From the NCBI GenBank assembly GCA_000708835.1, contig DF237016.1, positions 62,001 to 126,000 on the forward strand: a stretch of 64,000 nucleotides of DNA. Reading direction: 5' to 3'. Position 1 is the stretch's first letter. Each line of letters begins with the position of its first letter. Source of the stretch: Klebsormidium nitens. Taxonomy: Eukaryota > Plantae > Klebsormidiophyceae. The notes beneath the pieces are model-generated. The model saw only the letters and a program-made list of their open reading frames with translations. It was not told the origin of the DNA and ran no database searches. This document shows, one piece after another, positions 18,415-62,243 of this stretch. The position numbers were made by a program, and so were the translations under genes.

Positions 18415-18483
18415 AGAACATATTGCTAAAGGATGATGCGTAATGGTCCAGAACATATTGCTAAAGGATGATGCGTAATGGTC
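18415..18483. repeat. Perfect 34-bp tandem duplication (period 35)
   Basis: agaacatattgctaaaggatgatgcgtaatggtc at 18415-18448 and 18450-18483. Confidence 0.9.
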
Positions 18484-28236: not shown

Positions 28237-31200
28237 TCAAGATGGAGAAAGTACCTCCGCTAGGCTTGCATCCATTTCCGCGGCCCCGCTCTCAACGAGG
28301 GCCACGTTTGACTCCCTGTCGAGCCCCGGAACAGCAGTCAATGGGCTGTCAACGGACGGCTGGGACACGGAAACCGTGGCTTTGCGGGGCACAATCTCGC
28401 AGCGGTCCAGACACAAGTTGACGTACTCCGCCGACTCGTCCACGTAGCGCACCAACCACGGCTACAAGAGGGGTAGAGAAATTCTGATAATACCTTGATT
28501 TTGGAATTAACATTCATTTTGATAAACTTGACCTGATTGGACAAAGACAGAAGGCAGCGTGGCTACGAAGACCTTGAGCGCGTTGACGATTTAGAAGGGA
28601 GGCACCGAGACTCCTGAATAGTGATTGGACATCTTCACAGGTTTCAATCGCTTGAAAATAGACTTTGCTCTGCTCCGGAATACTTGACGAAGTACCGCCA
28701 CTAACGACCTGCTTTGACATTGTTGTCCCCGGTTAGAATCAGATTGCGGGCACGGGTCAGCGTATTTGATATTTGCAGGGCAAACGAGTAGTGAACAACA
28801 AACAGAACGCTTTGCAAGACGCCGCTCACCTGTGTATTCCTGAAGCCCATCGTGGCATCGAAGCTCTCGACCGTCGCCCACATCCACAGACGGGTCTTCA
28901 CGTCGAGAACCCGTACCTCCCTCCCAACAAGCGCAGCCCCATCGAGAGCCGGGTTTTTGATCAGCGCCGCTTCCGTCACGATCTTTTTAGGTTTCGGGGC
29001 CGAGGGTTGCCGGACCTTCCGCTGCCGGGCCGGCTTCTCCGGAAGGGTTAAGCCCAAACCCGCTCGCCAGGCGGCTTCCTGGGTAGCGTCGTTCCGCTCG
29101 AAAGGGTTGGGGAACAACTCGACCCGGTCTAATACCCGGGTAATTTCTAGAGTAGCTGCACTTGGGCTTAGCATGGATCCCGGAGAGAGGCCGCTCGGCG
29201 CAAAGTCCGGGCACATCAGGTCTGTTGCTAAGGTAGTATCACCAGTGCCGATTTTGCCCAGCTCTTCAGGCTCCAAACCGGGGAAGAGGAGAGTCTGGAC
29301 CACAGGATCGGGGCTTCGAACAGCTGCCGAGAAGGGTCCGCCCACGGGAGGGACCTCGGAAACTTCAATCGCCGTTCCGCCCCTCTCGTTCACTTCGATT
29401 ACAAGGGCGACCCCAGGTTCATCTGGAAAAGCGGTTGCTGGTGTTGTCTGGGCCGCAGCGGGAGACGCCCCGGTCCTTTCCGGGGCAGCCGGGGCAAAGT
29501 TTCTGGTCAGTGAAGGCGCCTTCGATGAGGGAGGACTCGGCCCGGATGATTCCCCTAGCCCTACCTGAGAAGTTAGCCGCTGCAAAAGTGCACTCGCCAG
29601 CGGCGAATGCCGTCCGCCGTTGGGGTCGGGTCTTCCAACCGAGGCGCTTCCGCTGGCTTCCCGCTCGCTCCCGGAGTCCTCGGAACATTCTACCGGGCTG
29701 CCTCTGCACTTACTCTCCTCCCCGCTGAAGAGCCCGGGACCTTCAACCGGGCAGCTGCCTGCAGCCGACCGCTCAAAGCAGACTGACGCCGGGGAGGACT
29801 GGTTCAAGGGCTCTACCGAGGGAGAAGGAGAAGAGTTCCCGGGCAAATGTACGCCTGGTTCCAGAGGGGGCGGGCTGCCGCCGGTGGCGCTCGGAACTAG
29901 CCTCCATTGCTCCTGAGGGAGGTCCAGATGCTCAACGGTTTCGTCCGCGGCATAGAAGATCTGCAGAAAGAAGATGCAAGTAAGAGCGCAGGGATAGAGT
30001 GAGAGGAAAGGAACCGAAAACAGGTGCTCTGCAAGACTGAACTTGATGCAACTTCAAGATGGACTTCAGATTTGCAATGGAGAGGACGGGACCGCTGGCC
30101 TCGATATCAGATCTTCTTCTGTTGCATGGAGTTGGTTGTTCGCGGCTTCGGTCAATTTTAAGGGCTTCCTCCGAAAGGGGAGCATTTTCTCTTGCAAAGG
30201 AACATGGTGACTTCCTTCTGGTCCAGAGAACCAGCACGCGTTGCTCTTCACTATCTAATCAGAAGCCGAGCATGTGCCTCTTAGCGAGGAGAGGATGCCG
30301 TCCAGGCAACGCCCGACCAGACGTGCCAACACTCAAGCCGACTATCAGCAGAATATGGGGCCTCGAATCACGACTAGCCGCTGACCTTATATGGCCTCTT
30401 GTTCCGTGGGTTGAAGCTCTGCACAAGGCCCACGTAGAAGGTGTTGTCCTGCGGCCAATACACCTCCACGTGGCGGCCCACCAGGGCCTGCCCGAGGAGC
30501 CCGGACGAAACCAGGGGCGGCGCCACGTCGCCCAGCTTGCGCTTCAAACTGGGCGCAGGCATGCCGCCATCTCCCTGCAGAGACCAGATCCAGGTCTAAT
30601 GTGGCGATTGGGCTCGGACAACCGCATGATCTAGGATATGTTCGGATCACGACCACCGTTTTGGGTTGGTCAACTGGACCGCGAGAAACCGTTAAAAGCA
30701 GGATCGGAGCTTTGCAAGATCGTTGTCAAACTTTTGCACCTCTCGTGGATCGGAGAAGCGTGGTGTAAGGAAAGGCATTCTGAAGAGTGGCTTGTCGAGA
30801 CGAAACCCTTTGCAATACCTGCGCAAAAGCAAGACTCCCTTTGGAAACTTTTTAAGGCTCAATTCTGCTCCGGATAACACTTGGTAAACATTGCTTGAGC
30901 CAGAGATAGTAACCAGATCACAGCCAGACAGTTGCCAACTGCTCTTATCCCATCTTTCCCCTTACCATGTACTCGCCCTTCTCGTCAAAGCGCCGCAGCC
31001 AGTCGTGCTCCGCGCGCGCCCACAGAACGATGCGCGCGTACTCGTCCGGCAGGTCCATCTTGTCCGAGATCTCCTCCGGACTGCGGTCCGGCCAGGGCAC
31101 CACCTTGTCCACCCACAGCGAGGACCACTTGTTCTGCTCGCCTTTAAATACCACCAGCGTCTTGCCCGTCTCCTCCTGCGCGAGCACCGCCGGGGACGCG

Positions 31201-34200
31201 TGCGCGCGGCTCTGGAGGACGGCGGGGTACCACTTGGGCCTGGATGGGAGAAACAGGGGGGAGCGCAGATCAGCATGGTTGAGAAAGACTGATTGAACTG
31301 TGGTGATCACCCTTCCGTTTCAGCAGTCAGTCTGCCGCCTAAGGGACTGTGCGTGAGACACAGGGCTCGCGGTCGAACTTTGAGGGAATTTGACTGTCAA
31401 GCTTCAGCTCACAACCGGGCCTAGAGGACGTCTTTCTAGCGGCTGGAGCAATCGCATCACGTAACTACTGCCCCGCTTGGAATGTGGCCCCGATCAAAAG
31501 AAGGCCGGACTGTGGAGACACAGCTCGGCCTTCTAGTCAGATTTGTAATATTTGAACCAGCAAGCTTTTGCACGGACGATCTTCAGGGATCGATGAGACA
31601 ACTTGCAGATATGGATAACTAAGACGGTCAAGAGGCATGACAAGTTTCGGAGCAGTGGCACACCTCCAGCCGGTCAGCGACGCCCAGACGACCGACTCCG
31701 CCGTCCGCGGGTATGCCTGGAAGTCGTCCAGCTTCATGCCGTACGTCCGAATCAGCTTCAGTTGCACGCTCTGCGACACCTCGAACCGTTTGTCCTTGAG
31801 TCGCTTGACGTAGTTCCTGACGTCAGCCTCAGCGAGGCCCGGCCGGATGGCTGTCAGGAACTTGCTTAGCGGGGTAAACGGCAGCAGCTCGGGCAGCTCC
31901 GAGAGGGCGCCACGTGCCAACAGGCCATTGGCTTCTCGAGGTGCTGCGTTGCCAGCGAGCCGCCACGCTGCACGCGGCCAGGCCTGCAGAAAGAAGTGCG
32001 TGATGTAAAGAGTCGGGAGTACAATTTCATTGTTGCGGAAACGAAGATATGACAAGGCTCGTCAATGAGAAGTACAGCTTCAATGTGCACCAACTCTGAT
32101 CAACACCAGCTCTGAGAAAAGCTTCTCGCTGGATACGGCATGCGCAAACGATCTGACTAACTTCATAAGACAGAAGCACCATTCGTTTATAAGCAGCGCC
32201 AGGTTATTAGGATGACGTGCTTGATGACGTCTCCAACTGTGATCCCTGCACTCGGTCCTGTTCAAACTTGTCCGCTACGCATGAAACAAAACTGCCAAGA
32301 AAACAAACCCGATGAGTTCTGTTGGTCGGTTCTGGAGCCGTTCGCATCGCAGTATTGGGTAATCTGATTACGGGCAGGGCCAAAATCACTGACCTCTGGG
32401 GCTGCGGGGTCGAAGGCTTGGTCGCCGTTTCCAGTCGTGTACTTCCGCCCCTCATAAGGGTTGGCAAGTCGTTTGCCAATGTACCAGGCGACCGGGACTG
32501 ACACCGCGTCGCCCACAAGAGCGAACCGCGCCCTTTCGTGCGCTTCGGGTGTCAAGTCACGGCTGACGCCTCCCTCAGTGCGGAGGCAGGGCCACGTGTG
32601 CCCGATCTCAAAGCCCTGGAGCCGCTCGGCATCTTCGATGGCGAGAAGGCCGGGAGGGGTCTCGCTGCCGGGGGTGACGATCATCCACCTGTGAAGATGC
32701 AGATGCCGACCACAATGAGTTCAGACTTGTATGATCGACCGACTAATCACGAGACTTGTGAGGTGGACTTGGAAGCTTCATCTAGCAAAGCCCCTAAAGG
32801 GCAAGTTCAGGAGGGTTTAAGCAGAACTTTTTGATTGGCCTGTCACAGTCAATCCTGCCTGAGAGTACTCGGCTGTTGACTGCGGCCCCCGGGTTGTGAT
32901 TGGGATTCCTGATCTTGGTCAAAATTTGGCGCCCACAGTTGGCCAGCAGGACAGTCTTGTAAAAAGAACTTATGGATAGGGACAGTAGCTGGATCAACAA
33001 CGGGGGTTCATCAGACAAAGGTTGGGTCTTGATTTCGACAGCATGCACTTTGGCCATGGACTATCGTTGATGACAACGACCAATCAGAGAGCAATAAAAA
33101 TCAGTATTCCTTGCAAAAGTGGGACCCAGTCTTTCTACCCGCTTTGTGATTGAAGCCAACCGAGAACAAACCGACATGCGGGGTTTGTTCTTCCTAAGCT
33201 TCATCTCTTTTGAAGATCAAAAGCGATGTCGACGTTCACCAGACGGCATCCAGTCTGTCCGACGAAAAGGATTATTTCCTAAAGTTCAGATGATCAAGTC
33301 GAGAGGGATCCCCCACCTGCTCCCGTTGCTCTTGGTGAGCGTTGGCATGACGCCCACGCAGCCCCCCGAGCGCCAGCACTCCAGGTCCATGGCATGAACC
33401 TCCTGTTCAAGGTCCTTCCCGTTCTCCCAACACAGCACGCACGGCGCAGCGCACGGGCTGCCGCAGCTGCCGACGTCAGCGAGCAACGCGTCTCTGCAGC
33501 AGTGGGAATTTTGATGAGGCGGATAGAATCAGGACTGAAATAAGAATTAATAACTTGTTGAAGACGTCAGCAGCGCCCTCGTTCGAGAAGGCGAGGAAAG
33601 TAGTGGAGACTCTGCCACTTTTGGCTACGATAGGCGCGCTGATCTTGATGTAATCAGCTAGCAGGTGGTTCTTGGTAGGCTGTCCTTTTCACAAACTTCT
33701 TTTGGAATGGGTGATCAAACAATTCACAGCAAGCAACGCTTACAACCTTTTGATGGACTTAAGGTAGAGAAGCAACAGACTCAGAATGCCCCATTATGGA
33801 TTTTGATTGGTAGCCAGAAACTACAGAGCTTCTAGCACACCTCTTTGTGGAAAAAAGAAATGACCCCCACTGACCTGGGGTCCCCGTGCAAGCAGGCCAC
33901 TATGAACACCCTGCGCCTGCGCTGCGGGTCTCCAAAGCCAGAAGTGTTGATGATTCGATAAGCCCAGCTGTAGCCGAGTCTCTCAAGCTGCTCCGCAACA
34001 TAGCCCATCACCACTGGCTGCCCGTGGATCCGATCGAGCAAACCTGCGTATGAAGACCAAGCACTACGGTTTGAAGGAGCTCAAGCGACGAGGCAAGCTC
34101 ACACTAACTGAGTTTTATGCCAGTGTTTCAGCTACAATTGCCTCCCTACAGCGGCCTCTTAACAAAAAGACAGGCTCCAGAAATGCAACGCAAGGGACTG

Positions 34201-35457
34201 TCGGATGATGGCTAGGGCTGATGAGTACTTGAAGGGTCACACAACTCTGACAGTTGAGCGTGGTGGTGCGAGATTGGAGGGTTGTCTGAATAAATGGCCA
34301 TAGTACAAACGCCTTTTCTAAAACGGATTTGTCAGCGCTCGAGTAAACAACAGCTTAAGCTAGTGGCCAAGTAAGAGTCGGTGTGAGCTCATGGCCATGC
34401 CCCCATCATAAATTCAAGCTTTTAAGGTAGAGTATAACATCTCTCCTTCCCTTACCAGGAACGTTCTCAAGTAGCACCCACTGGACGGGGCGCGAGGCCT
34501 TCAGCAATCTAAACACGTGGTGCACCATGCTAGTCTTGCTCCCCTTGAGGCCCTTCCTCGTGCTGGACTCAGGGCTCAGGTCTTGGCATGGGAACCCAGC
34601 AGCCACGATGTCAGTCTCCTTGGGCAGAGTTTGGACCTGCTCGACATTGGGGTGCAGCAGAGTCCCTGGGAAGTGGTGGCGTAGGACCTGGCGGCAACGG
34701 GGGTCGATCTCCACCTGGGGCAGTTGACAAGAAAGTGAGTCTTGAAGGGGTTACAGCTAGATTGATACTCTGCCAGGGGTATTGGAGTCTGAACACCCAT
34801 GTGTCATTGAGGTAATCATAGCACCCGTGCAAGCTCCCTAAGGTTAATTGCCATGGAAGTAAGCTTCTTGGAGGGGAGCGTCGATCTATACGTTTGAAAC
34901 AAGATAATATATGGAAGTGTTACCCTAACAAACGGTCCTGAAGAGGAGGGGGCAAGTTTTGGTTCGTGTGTACGCCTCTGATTGCTGAAGGTGGTGGTCA
35001 GTAATGGGGGATCCCTCTGAGCTAATTTCTCAGGGGGGATCGCTCTAACAAATTGATGTAAGTAGTGGTGGCGTGTCCATTGTTTGCAGGTCACCTCAGA
35101 TAAGACCACCTTCTACTTAGACTGCAAGGGAATCAGTCGATACTTCACCCTTCTATAAAACATGTCTAGATTGAGCACACAATCATTGTCCATCTTCACT
35201 ACTAAAGCAGCTCATTCCATTCCACTATCATCCCCTCCCAGAGGCTTCCTTCTCTGGTGCCCATCAATGCAATCGGTTCAAAGCTGCCGGACTCCATTAA
35301 CGCTGAATGCACCCTGCTTTCAATAGCCACATTGAGGACATCTAATCACCTGAAATGTGACTGTTTGTCCACTTACCTGCATGATGACATCATGGCCCGC
35401 CTTGGTGAGACCCAAATCCAGGCCACCGCAGCCACTGAAGAGACTGACCACCCTCAT
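28237..35457 (-). CDS. C5 cytosine DNA methyltransferase (bacterial-type catalytic domain) with C-terminal PWWP and two Tudor-like domains
   Basis: Motif I LFSGCGGLDLG (exon 35457-35377), IV AGFPCQD and VI LLENVP (34714-34456), VIII PQRRRRVF (34043-33875), IX AERLQGF and X VGDAVSVPV (32688-32394). These are followed by PWWP-like VVWASLTGWRPKWYPAV, Tudor-like LVGRHVEVYWPQDNTFYVGLVQSFN...IFYAADETVEHLDL, and a second Tudor-like LVGREVRVLD..WMWATVESFD..WLVRYVDESAEYVNL. Stop at 28237-28239. Confidence 0.88.
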
Positions 35458-38118: not shown

Positions 38119-39528
38119 ATGTCGGCTTCCACGGCCCCTAGCAAAGATAGAGGCATGAGTGGGGAAGCGCAGCAGCTTTGCGGAACGTCTAAAAGGGGTC
38201 GCTTTCGAGAAAGCACCGAGAAGCCCTTGAACAAAACCAGGAGGAAAAGGACAACAGAGGAGATGCTTCCCTGTGACTCGACGCCTCCGGAACCTCTTCC
38301 TCGACGCAAGTTACTGCGCTTCATGAGAGACAAGGCAGATGAGGCTGGCATGAGGCAGCACGAAGATGAGGACGAGCAGAGATCGACCTGGATAGACAAA
38401 TTCGGAGCAATCGTTCAGCTTCCCTGGCCGCCTTATGGCTATTTCATTGATCCTAATTGTGTCAAGGAAACAGCTCCAGTCAGTGGCGTGTCGCTGGATC
38501 ATGAAGTAAAGCAGACCATTCTCACAGTCATTGCAAGAACGGAGGCGGCTGCAATGCGTAACTTTTCCAACTTGAGCTTGAAGGACAGGAACTGCGTGGC
38601 TGTTCAATCTGGCGTTTTGGCCACGTTCCACAAGATGGCCTCGAGCTTTAAAAGCGTAGATCTCCGACCAACGAATCCTACAACGCTTGGTTGGAACAAA
38701 ACCAAGCCGTTCGAAGGTTCAAGCAGAAAACAGAGGGAGACCTGGGGCTATGCCAAAGAGATGTTTGAAGAAGGCTTGCTTTCGTCAGACTCTGAGTGTG
38801 AGGGAGAGGCTGATGGAGTAGGTGAGGAGCAAGAGGTCAGGCAGATCAAAAAGCGCAAAGACGCAGACACCAAAGATGCTCTTTGCAAAATGGAAGACGT
38901 GAAAGACTGCTTCGAGCAGATGCTCGAGCAGTTTACAGATGACAGCACGATGCCTGTGGAGGTGTGAATGGTTGAACAAAGCTCCCTGGAATTGACTGCA
39001 GGGGTGATCCATGTCCATGCCAGCTTGAACAGCGAAGAATTTGGACCGAGGCTTTACCGCCTGCTAAACCGCTTGGCCCTGGTAATGGAGAGTAATCTGG
39101 ACAAACTGCAGCTCAGCCGAAACAGGGCCTCTGGAGAAGAGCATGCCTGGCGAGTGACTGTCGAAAACACGAAACAAGGCACTACTGCGAAGTGCTCAGT
39201 ATGGGGTATCCTCACCGACAATGACTCCTACCTCTTTCTGGTTTTGGAGGCTGCCTTGCGCAAAGATGGTTCGCAGAAATGGACCTTCTGCAAGGGAGGC
39301 CGTGTGCATCTGAGCCGCCGTTACAGTCTGCTTCTGTCCTCTAGGCTAGGGAGGTCCGCTGCTCCTGGAGCAAGCTCGTGCTTGGACAGGCTGGCGCAAT
39401 TCTTGGCACCTCAGCTGCGAGTAAAATCAGTAGCAGAAGTGAAGGAAGTTTTCGAGAGCGCAGAGGCGGAGAGGGTCGAGCAAGATGCAGACGTGGTCAA
39501 GGATTACAGAATCTATAGCAGGTACTAA
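38119..39528 (+). CDS. Intronless orphan protein split by one in-frame TGA (282 aa + 186 aa); C-terminal half has a Crinkler-type REase-like motif
   Basis: ORFs 38119-38967 and 38968-39528 are in the same frame (GAG GTG TGA ATG). The paralog at 36.8-37.3 kb aligns to both halves. VWGILTDNDSYLF resembles the GIvTdg..W.F motif of CR-REase domains; this was recognised by eye only. Confidence 0.55.
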
Positions 39529-60416: not shown

Positions 60417-62243
60417 CTAGCCGGCCAATGGATTCGCATGGATTGTCACTTTGTTTAGTCGAATCTCGGCCAGAGGTTTGTCTCCCGGGCCCGTCGGTGT
60501 CTACACACGAGAGCCATGGGGGTCAAGCAATGCCAGATTCTTTTTGGAGAAGGAGAGGAAAAGGACTGCTTGCTTGAACAGCGCAAAAGAGATAATTCCT
60601 CCAGAATAAGAAGTATGGGACTGCTTGCTCGAACTTGTGAGGAAGTAATCGAAGATGTTGTAAAGAAGAAGCTCACCTTTTCCATGATGTCGAGTACCTC
60701 GAAACCGTGTATGACTTTCCCAAACACAGTGTAGAGACCGTTTAGGTGAGCCTGGGGTTTGTACAATCTGCACACGAGCAGCGCCGAAGTGCTTTTAGAA
60801 AACATGAATGCAGTGCCAATAGGGAGGTTGGACACTCAAGCAGACGAGCAGCTTCGTCGAAATCAAGTGACAAGATACGAAAAGCAAGTGGAGTGACGGG
60901 CGCATCTGTTTCTGCTCATACGGGTGATGAAGAATGAAGTGGCTTCATGCAATCTCTATAAAGCGGTGTTTGAAATCTGACCAATCTTCGTCAAAATACG
61001 CGTCTGACAGGTGGACCAATAAAGAGAGTTTAAGACAATACACTGCGGTAGATAAAGACATCTGCTAAAATCGTCAAAAAGAATGAGTAAAGATTTCTAA
61101 GTTGCGAACTCACAGGAAAAATTGGGACTTGTTTGTGTTTGGGCCGCTATTTGCCATCGACAAGATGCCCCTGCACAGACCAAAGGAGACAAAGTTTGAC
61201 ATCTCATCAATTGTGAAACAACCAGCCTGGACTGGCGCCACATCTGCCTACTTACATTTGGGTTGTCATATAGAAAGCGAGCCGCTCTTCATCAAGGAGC
61301 TCAACGTTTGTTCTGTGGCAGGACCTGAGCCCTGAGAGGTTCTCAATCAGATGATTGAGATTTGAGTGAAATCTGGCAACTTGACCCCTTGCGGAAGAAC
61401 CTAAGATATCTGTTCGATCTCCTCTTGAAGCAATTACGTCACCAAAATCTCCAACATCAACTGGTTGCTCAGACGTATGCCCACATAAGCGGCTTCTTCA
61501 CAGCACAGTATGAACACTCTGCTGAAAAGTCTCACCTTGCATTATGCTTAAGATTGTCTCTGATCTCATCAGGAAACTTGCCGCCCCAGATGCTCTGCCC
61601 CCCCTTCCCTGTTCCTGTAGGATCGCCGCCCTGTATCATGAAACCTTTGATGTTCCTGCAAAGACCGGGAGGGCGGGGAGCTGAGCATCTTCACCACCCC
61701 CTGACTGCACATTTTCATTTCACTAAACGCAAGATAACTATCAAGGCGGCCAATAAAGCAATGAGAAAACATTGAAAGCCTTGCAGGCCGATCGAAGCAC
61801 CGGTGGCAATCACCTGTGGAAGACGGTACCATCATAGTAGCCGCTGGCGCAGAGCGCCAGAAAGTTCTCTGCCGCTTTTGGGACGTCTGTACAGAAGACC
61901 TCGCACTTGATGTCCCCAAGGTTGGTGTGGAGAGTCACCGACTGCAATGGCTTTGTCTCTTTGAGCAAATAGATTCTTGAAGAGAAGAGAAAACCAACTC
62001 AGTGGAATTTTGTAACATTGAGGACCAGACGATGGTGTGAAGGTGGTAAAACAGGCTTGGATGAGATGCTGTCATCTGACACATCGTATCAAAGATCATC
62101 GCTCAAATTGGATATGCGATTCACAACAGACATCTTTTTCTCAGGCCCTAAAAGTCTGATAAACCGAATCATGCAAGGGCGTAGGAGTAGCGTGATACAC
62201 GAGACTTGGCAGCATGTTCGATCTTGACCGCTTCGCTTACCAT
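60417..62243 (-). CDS. PPIL3: Cyclophilin peptidyl-prolyl isomerase, PPIL3 / CYP18-1 type
   Basis: ATG-only first coding exon (62241-62243), then [55 protein letters not shown], and the end [27 protein letters not shown]. Confidence 0.93.

Follow-up and report, generated by a model that had tools for sequence, protein, structure and literature searches.

We describe a gene of the charophyte alga Klebsormidium nitens that lies on the reverse strand of contig DF237016.1 (assembly GCA_000708835.1) within a window of 64,000 nucleotides, which is the whole stretch analysed (contig positions 62,001 to 126,000; all positions below are those of the window). The gene encodes a bacterial-type C5 DNA methyltransferase (MTase) continued by a C-terminal tail with one PWWP and two Tudor domains (Table 1), and we are highly confident, as regards both identity and architecture, that the protein is a member of the green-lineage clade published as ChloroDNMT. 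Its exons were spliced by eye from the list of open reading frames (ORFs) together with the sequence, and then checked by script: all nine introns are GT-AG with consistent phases, the coding sequence (CDS) runs from a start codon at 35457 to a stop codon at 28239-28237, and it is free of internal stops. The translation (P0182) equals GenBank GAQ80957.1 (UniProt A0A1Y1HWQ5; Klebsormidium nitens) at every residue, and thus the gene model of the window is the deposited K. nitens model. That entry, also present in EukProt, is annotated as 'S-adenosyl-L-methionine-dependent methyltransferase superfamily protein' with PF00145 only. G+C content is flat and alike in the gene and its flanks.

Table 1. 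Parts of the gene in window coordinates, with amino-acid identity and dN/dS against the orthologue L005 from a K. nitens relative
Feature	Position	Strand	Extent and character	Identity to L005	dN/dS
Whole coding region	35457-28237	-	10 exons, 3120-nt CDS, 1039 aa		
Exons 1-5	35457-35377, 34714-34456, 34043-33875, 33493-33317, 32688-32394	-			
Exons 6-10	31983-31664, 31239-30966, 30574-30386, 29960-28830, 28461-28237	-			
C5 DNA methyltransferase domain	32394-35457	-	aa 1-327, exons 1-5, PF00145	82%	0.09
Conserved interdomain region	31714-31983	-	aa 328-417, opens with WPRAAW motif	87%	0.08
PWWP domain	30966-31713	-	aa 418-525, split by intron 6	87%	0.16
Tudor 1	29889-30517	-	aa about 545-612, split by intron 8, RDM15/PDS5C type	60%	0.16
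Pro/Ser/Ala-rich linker	28983-29888	-	aa 613-914, by composition	31%, many gaps	0.41
Tudor 2	28387-28982	-	aa 915-990 (fold about 925-990), split by intron 9	64%	0.36
C-terminal tail and stop codon	28237-28386	-	aa 991-1039, poorly conserved	25%	0.61

Catalytic domain and reader tail

The N-terminus of the protein is motif I itself (MRVVSLFSGCGG, aa 1-12), followed by motif IV (PC) with the catalytic Cys70 (codon 34588-34586), ENV at 110-112, QRRRR at 154-158, RLQGF at 251-255 and GDAV at 288-291, the order I, IV, VI, VIII, IX, X being canonical and unpermuted. Pfam PF00145 matches the full protein with E = 5.5e-38. Among PDB sequences, M.HaeIII (2.6e-17) and M.HhaI (4e-16) come far ahead of DNMT2 (2.6e-8) and DNMT1 (4e-7), which makes 'bacterial-type' a fair label for the catalytic domain, and the same search returned no match to the catalytic domains of DNMT3A or DNMT3B at E <= 0.01. 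Between motif VIII and the target-recognition region lies a Cys-rich insert (C180, C184, C188 and C191, spaced C-x3-C-x3-C-x2-C, at about 33467-33432 on the reverse strand) that may bind zinc; comparable Cys clusters are seen at the same place in the sequences of relatives.

The interdomain region behind the catalytic domain is matched in most family members by phmmer and has no significant match in Pfam. A stand-alone relative of 406 aa (P0047) aligns through this region, up to residue 412 of the K. nitens protein. For the domains further downstream, profiles and structure models were required, because Pfam scans of the individual exons and of the whole protein found PF00145 only. The PWWP signature reads P-K-W-Y-P, and a PDB search with the single sequence of the PWWP region gave nothing significant. 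When residues 415-530 serve as the seed of an iterated profile search among the retrieved relatives, the profile converges on the domains annotated there as PF00855, and the family profile finds the PWWPs of NSD2, DNMT3B, NSD3, MSH6 and BRPF1 in the PDB (E = 4e-18 to 3e-9). Furthermore, an AlphaFold2 model of residues 415-530 (pLDDT 76) displays five strands and then helices, and the best 50 Foldseek matches to it are all PWWP, though the scores are modest (E = 4.4e-4 at best, TM about 0.65). A candidate cage formed by W433, Y438 and F465 together with E468 aligns to the DNMT3B positions in KGF-SWW-P and VQW-FGD.

Tudor 1 on its own matches PDB 7DE9, the Arabidopsis RDM15 (PDS5C) Tudor bound to H3K4me1, with E = 1.6e-7, and the family profile does so with 4.4e-18, the LBR Tudor coming next. 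The RDM15 cage consists of Trp616, Tyr623 and Tyr641, and Asp643 together with Asp645 coordinates the monomethylammonium and confers me1 specificity (PMC8184781). By alignment, the cage positions of Tudor 1 are occupied by W565, Y572 and F590/Y591, and the Tudors of chlorophyte relatives keep the full RDM15 signature for H3K4me1 (W, Y, Y-D-D-G-D). The linker behind Tudor 1 is presumably disordered. Tudor 2, which follows it, has no direct PDB or Pfam match in single-sequence searches; it aligns to the Tudor family profile in hhalign (78%, E = 1.8e-5), and its AlphaFold2 model (pLDDT 79), biased towards a Tudor fold because the underlying alignment consists of Tudor-1-type sequences, finds 7DE9 as the best Foldseek match (TM 0.89 normalised to 7DE9, rmsd 0.9 A), followed by the PHF1 Tudors. 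Two small insertions are common to both Tudors of the K. nitens protein. From its sequence, Tudor 2 is a degenerate but conserved copy.

An orthologue of the gene, with the same series of exons, is present in two JGI metagenomes (3300060284 and 3300060285; L005:9093-17889 and L006:433-9229) and derives from a close relative of K. nitens. The methylase exons are 70-89% identical per exon, and the pattern of identity and dN/dS against L005 (Table 1) argues that all four structured modules are constrained. In this alignment, the linker can hardly be aligned at all, but residues 915-964 and the beginning of exon 10 next to it form islands of conservation; for Tudor 2, the gap in dN/dS to the linker is small, and it is mainly this island of identity that suggests constraint.

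The gene had come to attention through an earlier note, made from the letters of the DNA alone, which described a protein opening at motif I with motifs IV, VI, VIII, IX and X complete and in linear order, a bacterial-like catalytic domain, a PWWP-like domain in frame behind it, a Tudor-like domain, a long Pro/Ser/Ala-rich linker and a second Tudor-like domain. As an observation this proved correct in every particular, from gene model and motifs to profiles and structure models, and the limits given for the gene (28237-35457) coincide exactly with its spliced start and stop. Likewise, the PF00145 match that it proposed to look for was found, whereas PF00855 and Tudor profiles from Pfam made no call on the K. 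nitens protein, where the folds are supported by profiles and models instead; structure prediction, which it had named as a way to overturn the domain assignment, upholds both the PWWP and the Tudor folds.

Place in the green-algal family

An exhaustive search with exon 2 yielded 4877 matches at E <= 0.001, the best of them including proteins of ~700-1200 aa, and word-indexed searches with P0085 and P0182 gave the names of relatives: Trebouxia, Myrmecia, Coccomyxa, Apatococcus, Elliptochloris, Chlorella, Micractinium, Auxenochlorella, Parachlorella, Tetradesmus, Scenedesmus, Dunaliella, Haematococcus, Botryococcus, Symbiochloris, Cymbomonas, Pedinophyceae and Ostreococcus, many further relatives being marine metagenome proteins. 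Precomputed annotation assigns PF00145 and PF00855 to most of them and PF21743 to some, and the order MTase, PWWP, Tudor is a common layout (89 of the 318 proteins retrieved). The family is mainly chlorophyte; among streptophytes, the K. nitens protein was the single named member that the database searches recovered.

In a maximum-likelihood tree of 83 catalytic domains, the algal proteins with reader domains fall on one side of a branch with an SH-aLRT support of 96, and on the other side stand-alone or Vsr-fused bacterial-type MTases are found, one of them from Curtobacterium. The K. nitens protein lies inside the algal group, which comprises 43 rows (including Trebouxia, Chlorella, Coccomyxa, Dunaliella, Tetradesmus, Cymbomonas and Ostreococcus), and is sister to P0016 (support 95), its closest relative in the tree. 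P0016 (L004:178-2520, Logan run ERR12684112) is a complete MTase and PWWP ORF of 780 aa on an intron-free, transcript-like 2.7-kb contig, and its single reading frame suggests that both parts are co-transcribed in a relative. It lacks a Tudor, which shows that even close to the K. nitens branch this module is not present throughout. A further variable element is a mono-CXXC unit (PF15626) between PWWP and Tudor, which Pfam recovers in two of three relatives rescanned (P0275:612-670, E = 3.7e-20; P0205:801-841) and which precomputed annotation gives for P0273, while many other relatives carry a Cys-rich stretch with C-x-x-C at this place. No trace of it was found in the K. nitens protein, where PWWP passes into Tudor 1 within ~20 residues and intron 7 holds no ORF with C-x-x-C.

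The family has already been named, and its layout is neither undescribed nor specific to streptophytes. In 2012, two putative DNA methyltransferases with a C-terminal PWWP were reported from Ostreococcus tauri, and also in Micromonas and Chlorella, one of these enzymes being bacterial-like and both being judged independent of animal DNMT3 (PMC3457860). In 2023, a Chlorophyta-specific clade was named 'Chlorophyta DNMT6-like' and said to have 'diverged from DNMT6 and DNMT3' (PMC10538959), and in 2025 'ChloroDNMTs' of chlorophytes and charophytes, treated as separate from DNMT6, were described as 'often' having a PWWP acquired independently of animal DNMT3 (PMC12344493). Table S1 of the latter study, which gives counts only and draws its proteomes from EukProt, lists one ChloroDNMT in K. 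nitens (next to six 'orphan' DNMTs), three in Spirogloea, one in Mesotaenium, 1-3 in most chlorophytes listed, and none in Chlamydomonas, Volvox or land plants, a distribution that agrees with the relatives retrieved here.

These papers and the tree bear on the wider claims of the earlier note. It had taken the layout to be undescribed and the pathway to belong to streptophyte algae; the first claim falls, as green-algal enzymes with a C-terminal PWWP were reported in 2012 and the clade received its names in 2023 and 2025, and so does the second, as database searches and tree place the family mainly in chlorophytes. By tree and literature, the catalytic domain nests in a described family with this architecture, an outcome that the note itself had listed as speaking against its proposal. 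The catalytic-domain phylogeny it suggested groups the protein with chlorophyte proteins, in a tree built without DNMT1, DNMT3, DNMT5 and DNMT6 references. Its view that a bacterial-like MTase gained chromatin readers independently holds: the bacterial-like character is borne out by the best PDB matches (M.HaeIII and M.HhaI) and the sister group of stand-alone and Vsr-fused MTases, and the independent gain of the PWWP agrees with the published view (PMC12344493). The histone-guided pathway that it put forward is a plausible hypothesis.

In the literature searched, the name 'ChloroDNMT' is confined to one sentence of PMC12344493 and its preprint, the text of the papers on the clade has no mention of a Tudor module (the word 'Tudor' occurs zero times in the main text of PMC12344493), and neither a functional study of any family member nor a description of the mono-CXXC, PWWP and Tudor architecture was found. 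What seems not to be in print, then, is the Tudor module, its kinship to an H3K4me1 reader, the second Tudor specific to Klebsormidium, the absence of mono-CXXC there, and any functional test. A chlorophyte methylase clade with chromatin domains was reportedly treated by Iyer, Abhiman and Aravind (2011), which we take as a lead only. Retrotransposon-borne Klebsormidium DNMTs (de Mendoza et al. 2018) were considered as well and set aside: those are intronless, of Dnmt3 type, and located inside Gypsy Pol ORFs.

With the ChloroDNMT clade, the K. nitens protein shares a C5 MTase restricted to the green lineage, the catalytic domain in first place and a C-terminal PWWP; its PF00145 domain clusters in the green-algal clade, and its host is a charophyte. 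It differs from its relatives there in lacking the mono-CXXC unit, in a second Tudor set behind a ~300-aa linker, and in PWWP and Tudor domains too divergent for Pfam. As the earlier note had also argued from the layout, motif order, Pfam and PDB matches set the protein apart from the better-known eukaryotic families. Animal DNMT3A and DNMT3B likewise combine a cytosine MTase with a PWWP (the family PWWP profile matches that of DNMT3B with E = 1e-15) and are the functional analogue for histone-guided de novo methylation; however, their PWWP is N-terminal, they possess an ADD domain (none was found by Pfam on the K. nitens protein) and no Tudor, and the catalytic domains are not close. Unlike DNMT1/MET1 and CMT, the protein has no RFTS, BAH or chromodomain according to Pfam, and DNMT1 is matched only at 4e-7; unlike DRM, its motifs are unpermuted and Pfam found no UBA. 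DNMT2 is a stand-alone enzyme of ~350 aa, whereas the K. nitens protein has three reader domains in 1039 aa and a DNMT2 match weaker than the bacterial ones. DNMT6, represented by enzymes of Thalassiosira and kinetoplastids, is reported to lack companion domains, which the K. nitens protein possesses.

Closer likenesses exist to parts of the protein. Bacterial type II and Dcm-like C5 MTases (M.HaeIII, M.HhaI and the Vsr-fused Curtobacterium enzyme) have the same motif order and a short target-recognition region, and they provide the best PDB sequence matches and the sister group in the tree, but the K. nitens protein has no restriction or Vsr partner, is interrupted by nine introns and bears a eukaryotic chromatin-reader tail of ~700 aa. 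Among solved structures, the Arabidopsis RDM15/PDS5C Tudor (7DE9) is the one most closely related to Tudor 1, and it also gives the best structural match to the Tudor 2 model; as in plant MSH6, a reader of H3K4me1 type is here joined to a DNA-transaction enzyme, although elsewhere the hosts of RDM15-type Tudors are cohesin-regulator or mismatch-repair proteins (plant MSH6) and not an MTase. The adenine-N6 DNA MTases of the same organisms are also bacterial-type enzymes that gained histone-reader domains, but they differ in chemistry and belong to an unrelated catalytic family, and no Tudor is reported in them.

Surroundings of the gene

Antisense to exon 9, and wholly inside the G+C-rich stretch coding for the linker, a 238-aa ORF occupies 28852-29568 on the forward strand, most likely a by-product of composition and not a gene. 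Elsewhere in the window, a forward ORF at 11612-12352 matches short-chain dehydrogenase/reductase (SDR) families (PF13561, 4.9e-12; PF00106, 9.7e-8) and is presumably an exon of a neighbouring SDR gene. Two adjoining forward ORFs (282 and 186 aa) at 38119-39528 have no Pfam match, and this stretch is the only one in the window with a marked skew of G over C (0.12). The window's only tandem repeat scoring above 80, a perfect duplication of a 35-bp unit, is located at 18415-18483, far from the methyltransferase gene. Scans of the 64-kb window for tRNA genes and Rfam families gave no matches, and the ten long ORFs scanned contained no transposon or viral domains.

Target and function of the enzyme

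The explanation that accounts best for the whole of the evidence is an intron-rich nuclear gene of the ChloroDNMT clade whose product serves reader-guided methylation of DNA cytosines, with gene bodies as the likeliest target, and we regard it as probable; the specific model of gene-body targeting, drawn by analogy with other systems, is credible but tentative. The enzyme would methylate DNA cytosines at sites picked by its readers, the PWWP docking, like those of DNMT3 and NSD, on linker DNA and nucleosomes of H3K36me2/3 type, and Tudor 1 on methylated H3K4. The methylation state preferred by Tudor 1 may differ in K. nitens, since one of the two specificity aspartates is replaced by Ala. The role of Tudor 2, with its cage broken yet the domain conserved, is probably non-canonical, and could consist of contact with a partner, DNA or RNA, or of bivalent spacing. 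Gene-body chromatin is the likeliest target because in plants both marks are typical of the bodies of transcribed genes, and K. nitens possesses CG gene-body methylation (PMC5890265). H3K4me1 is presented as a gene-body mark in plants in 10.1101/2022.05.28.493846, and animal DNMT3 is brought to gene bodies by PWWP and H3K36me3 (PMC12344493).

Several points weigh against this explanation. First, the tree lacks the references mentioned above, and membership of the clade follows from co-clustering with chlorophyte proteins and from a published table of counts, not accessions. Second, motif X reads GDAV rather than GNAV, and what the enzyme acts on (DNA or RNA), in which sequence context, and what its readers bind are all inferred. 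Third, the readers themselves are unorthodox: neither PWWP nor Tudor is called by Pfam, the PWWP motif K-W-Y-P is atypical, and the residues of the PWWP cage were placed by alignment alone. In Tudor 1, both HMMER and MAFFT alignments put Ala opposite RDM15 Asp643 (and Asp or Glu at 645), while Tudor 2, besides the bias of its model, has Asp941 and Met948 for the Trp and Tyr equivalent to Trp616 and Tyr623, two of three aromatics thus being lost and Y971 present. Finally, prasinophytes are reported to be without gene-body methylation though carrying family members (PMC11244446), and K. nitens also has DNMT1, CMT, DNMT3 and DRM, which are possible gene-body methylators (PMC12344493, Table S1).

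Some of these points feed an alternative that we consider unlikely but still serious, in which the readers are not meant for histone lysine methylation or the target lies elsewhere: the PWWP would mainly bind DNA, the ligand of the Tudors would be a non-histone partner, methyl-arginine or nucleic acid, and the enzyme would carry out de novo or maintenance methylation of transposons, viral insertions or nucleosome linkers. The Ala in Tudor 1, the broken cage of Tudor 2 and the atypical PWWP motif would all suit such a function, as would the mono-CXXC unit between PWWP and Tudor of chlorophyte relatives, which, like CXXC domains in general, could bind DNA. It would also fit the prasinophyte case (PMC11244446) and the enrichment of K. 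nitens methylation on virus-derived genes (PMC12344493). However, three aromatic cage positions are filled in Tudor 1 as well as in the PWWP, the chlorophyte Tudors carry the complete RDM15 signature for H3K4me1, and for both domains the nearest relatives of solved structure read methylated histone lysines.

We consider it improbable that the enzyme is catalytically dead or acts on RNA like DNMT2 or DNMT6, its chromatin domains merely providing a scaffold. Although the GDAV of motif X, DNMT2 as the best eukaryotic PDB match (2.6e-8) and the placement of the clade near DNMT6 (PMC10538959, 2023) could be read in this way, motifs I, IV (PC), VI (ENV), VIII and IX are intact, the catalytic domain evolves at a dN/dS of 0.09, and bacterial DNA methylases match far better than DNMT2; furthermore, RNA-directed DNMT2 and DNMT6 are consistently reported without companion domains (PMC12344493). 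Very improbable is a gene model fused from two genes, one for a methylase and one for a separate PWWP/Tudor protein. While introns 6 (424 nt) and 7 (391 nt) could in principle conceal a terminator and a promoter, intron phases agree at every junction, the PWWP is split by intron 6 and begins in an exon shared with the conserved post-methylase region, the order is kept in 89 relatives, including the 780-aa ORF of P0016 and an MMETSP transcript model (P0198), and the deposited GenBank model is identical. Least probable of all is a recent bacterial, giant-virus or transposon insertion in place of a host gene, for although the catalytic domain is bacterial-like and K. nitens has giant-virus insertions and six 'orphan' DNMTs, the gene has nine spliceosomal introns, a G+C content like its flanks, orthologues across Chlorophyta with a syntenic exon structure in a related alga, and no transposon or viral domains in the ten long window ORFs scanned.

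Returning to reader-guided methylation at gene bodies, a bolder proposal, more doubtful than the targeting model itself, is that ChloroDNMTs represent a second, independently assembled 'DNMT3-like' solution, in which PWWP (H3K36me) and RDM15-type Tudor (H3K4me1) would steer the enzyme to gene bodies and so cause the CG methylation that gene bodies carry in Klebsormidium and Chlorella, the module having possibly been re-tuned in the Klebsormidium lineage by loss of the mono-CXXC, change of a specificity aspartate and addition of a cage-less Tudor. We did not find this proposal stated in the literature searched. A smaller, practical gain is that a protein annotated by PF00145 only carries a full reader tail, and that the Tudor of the family is of the H3K4me1-reader type. 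More broadly, the family offers a natural experiment in convergence, as animals joined a PWWP to DNMT3 for the methylation of gene bodies and green algae extended an unrelated methylase of bacterial type with both PWWP and Tudor. How gene-body methylation arose in the plant lineage is unsettled, and the pattern of K. nitens is unlike that of land plants; a reader-guided ChloroDNMT would be a concrete candidate for the enzyme that deposits gene-body methylation in this alga.

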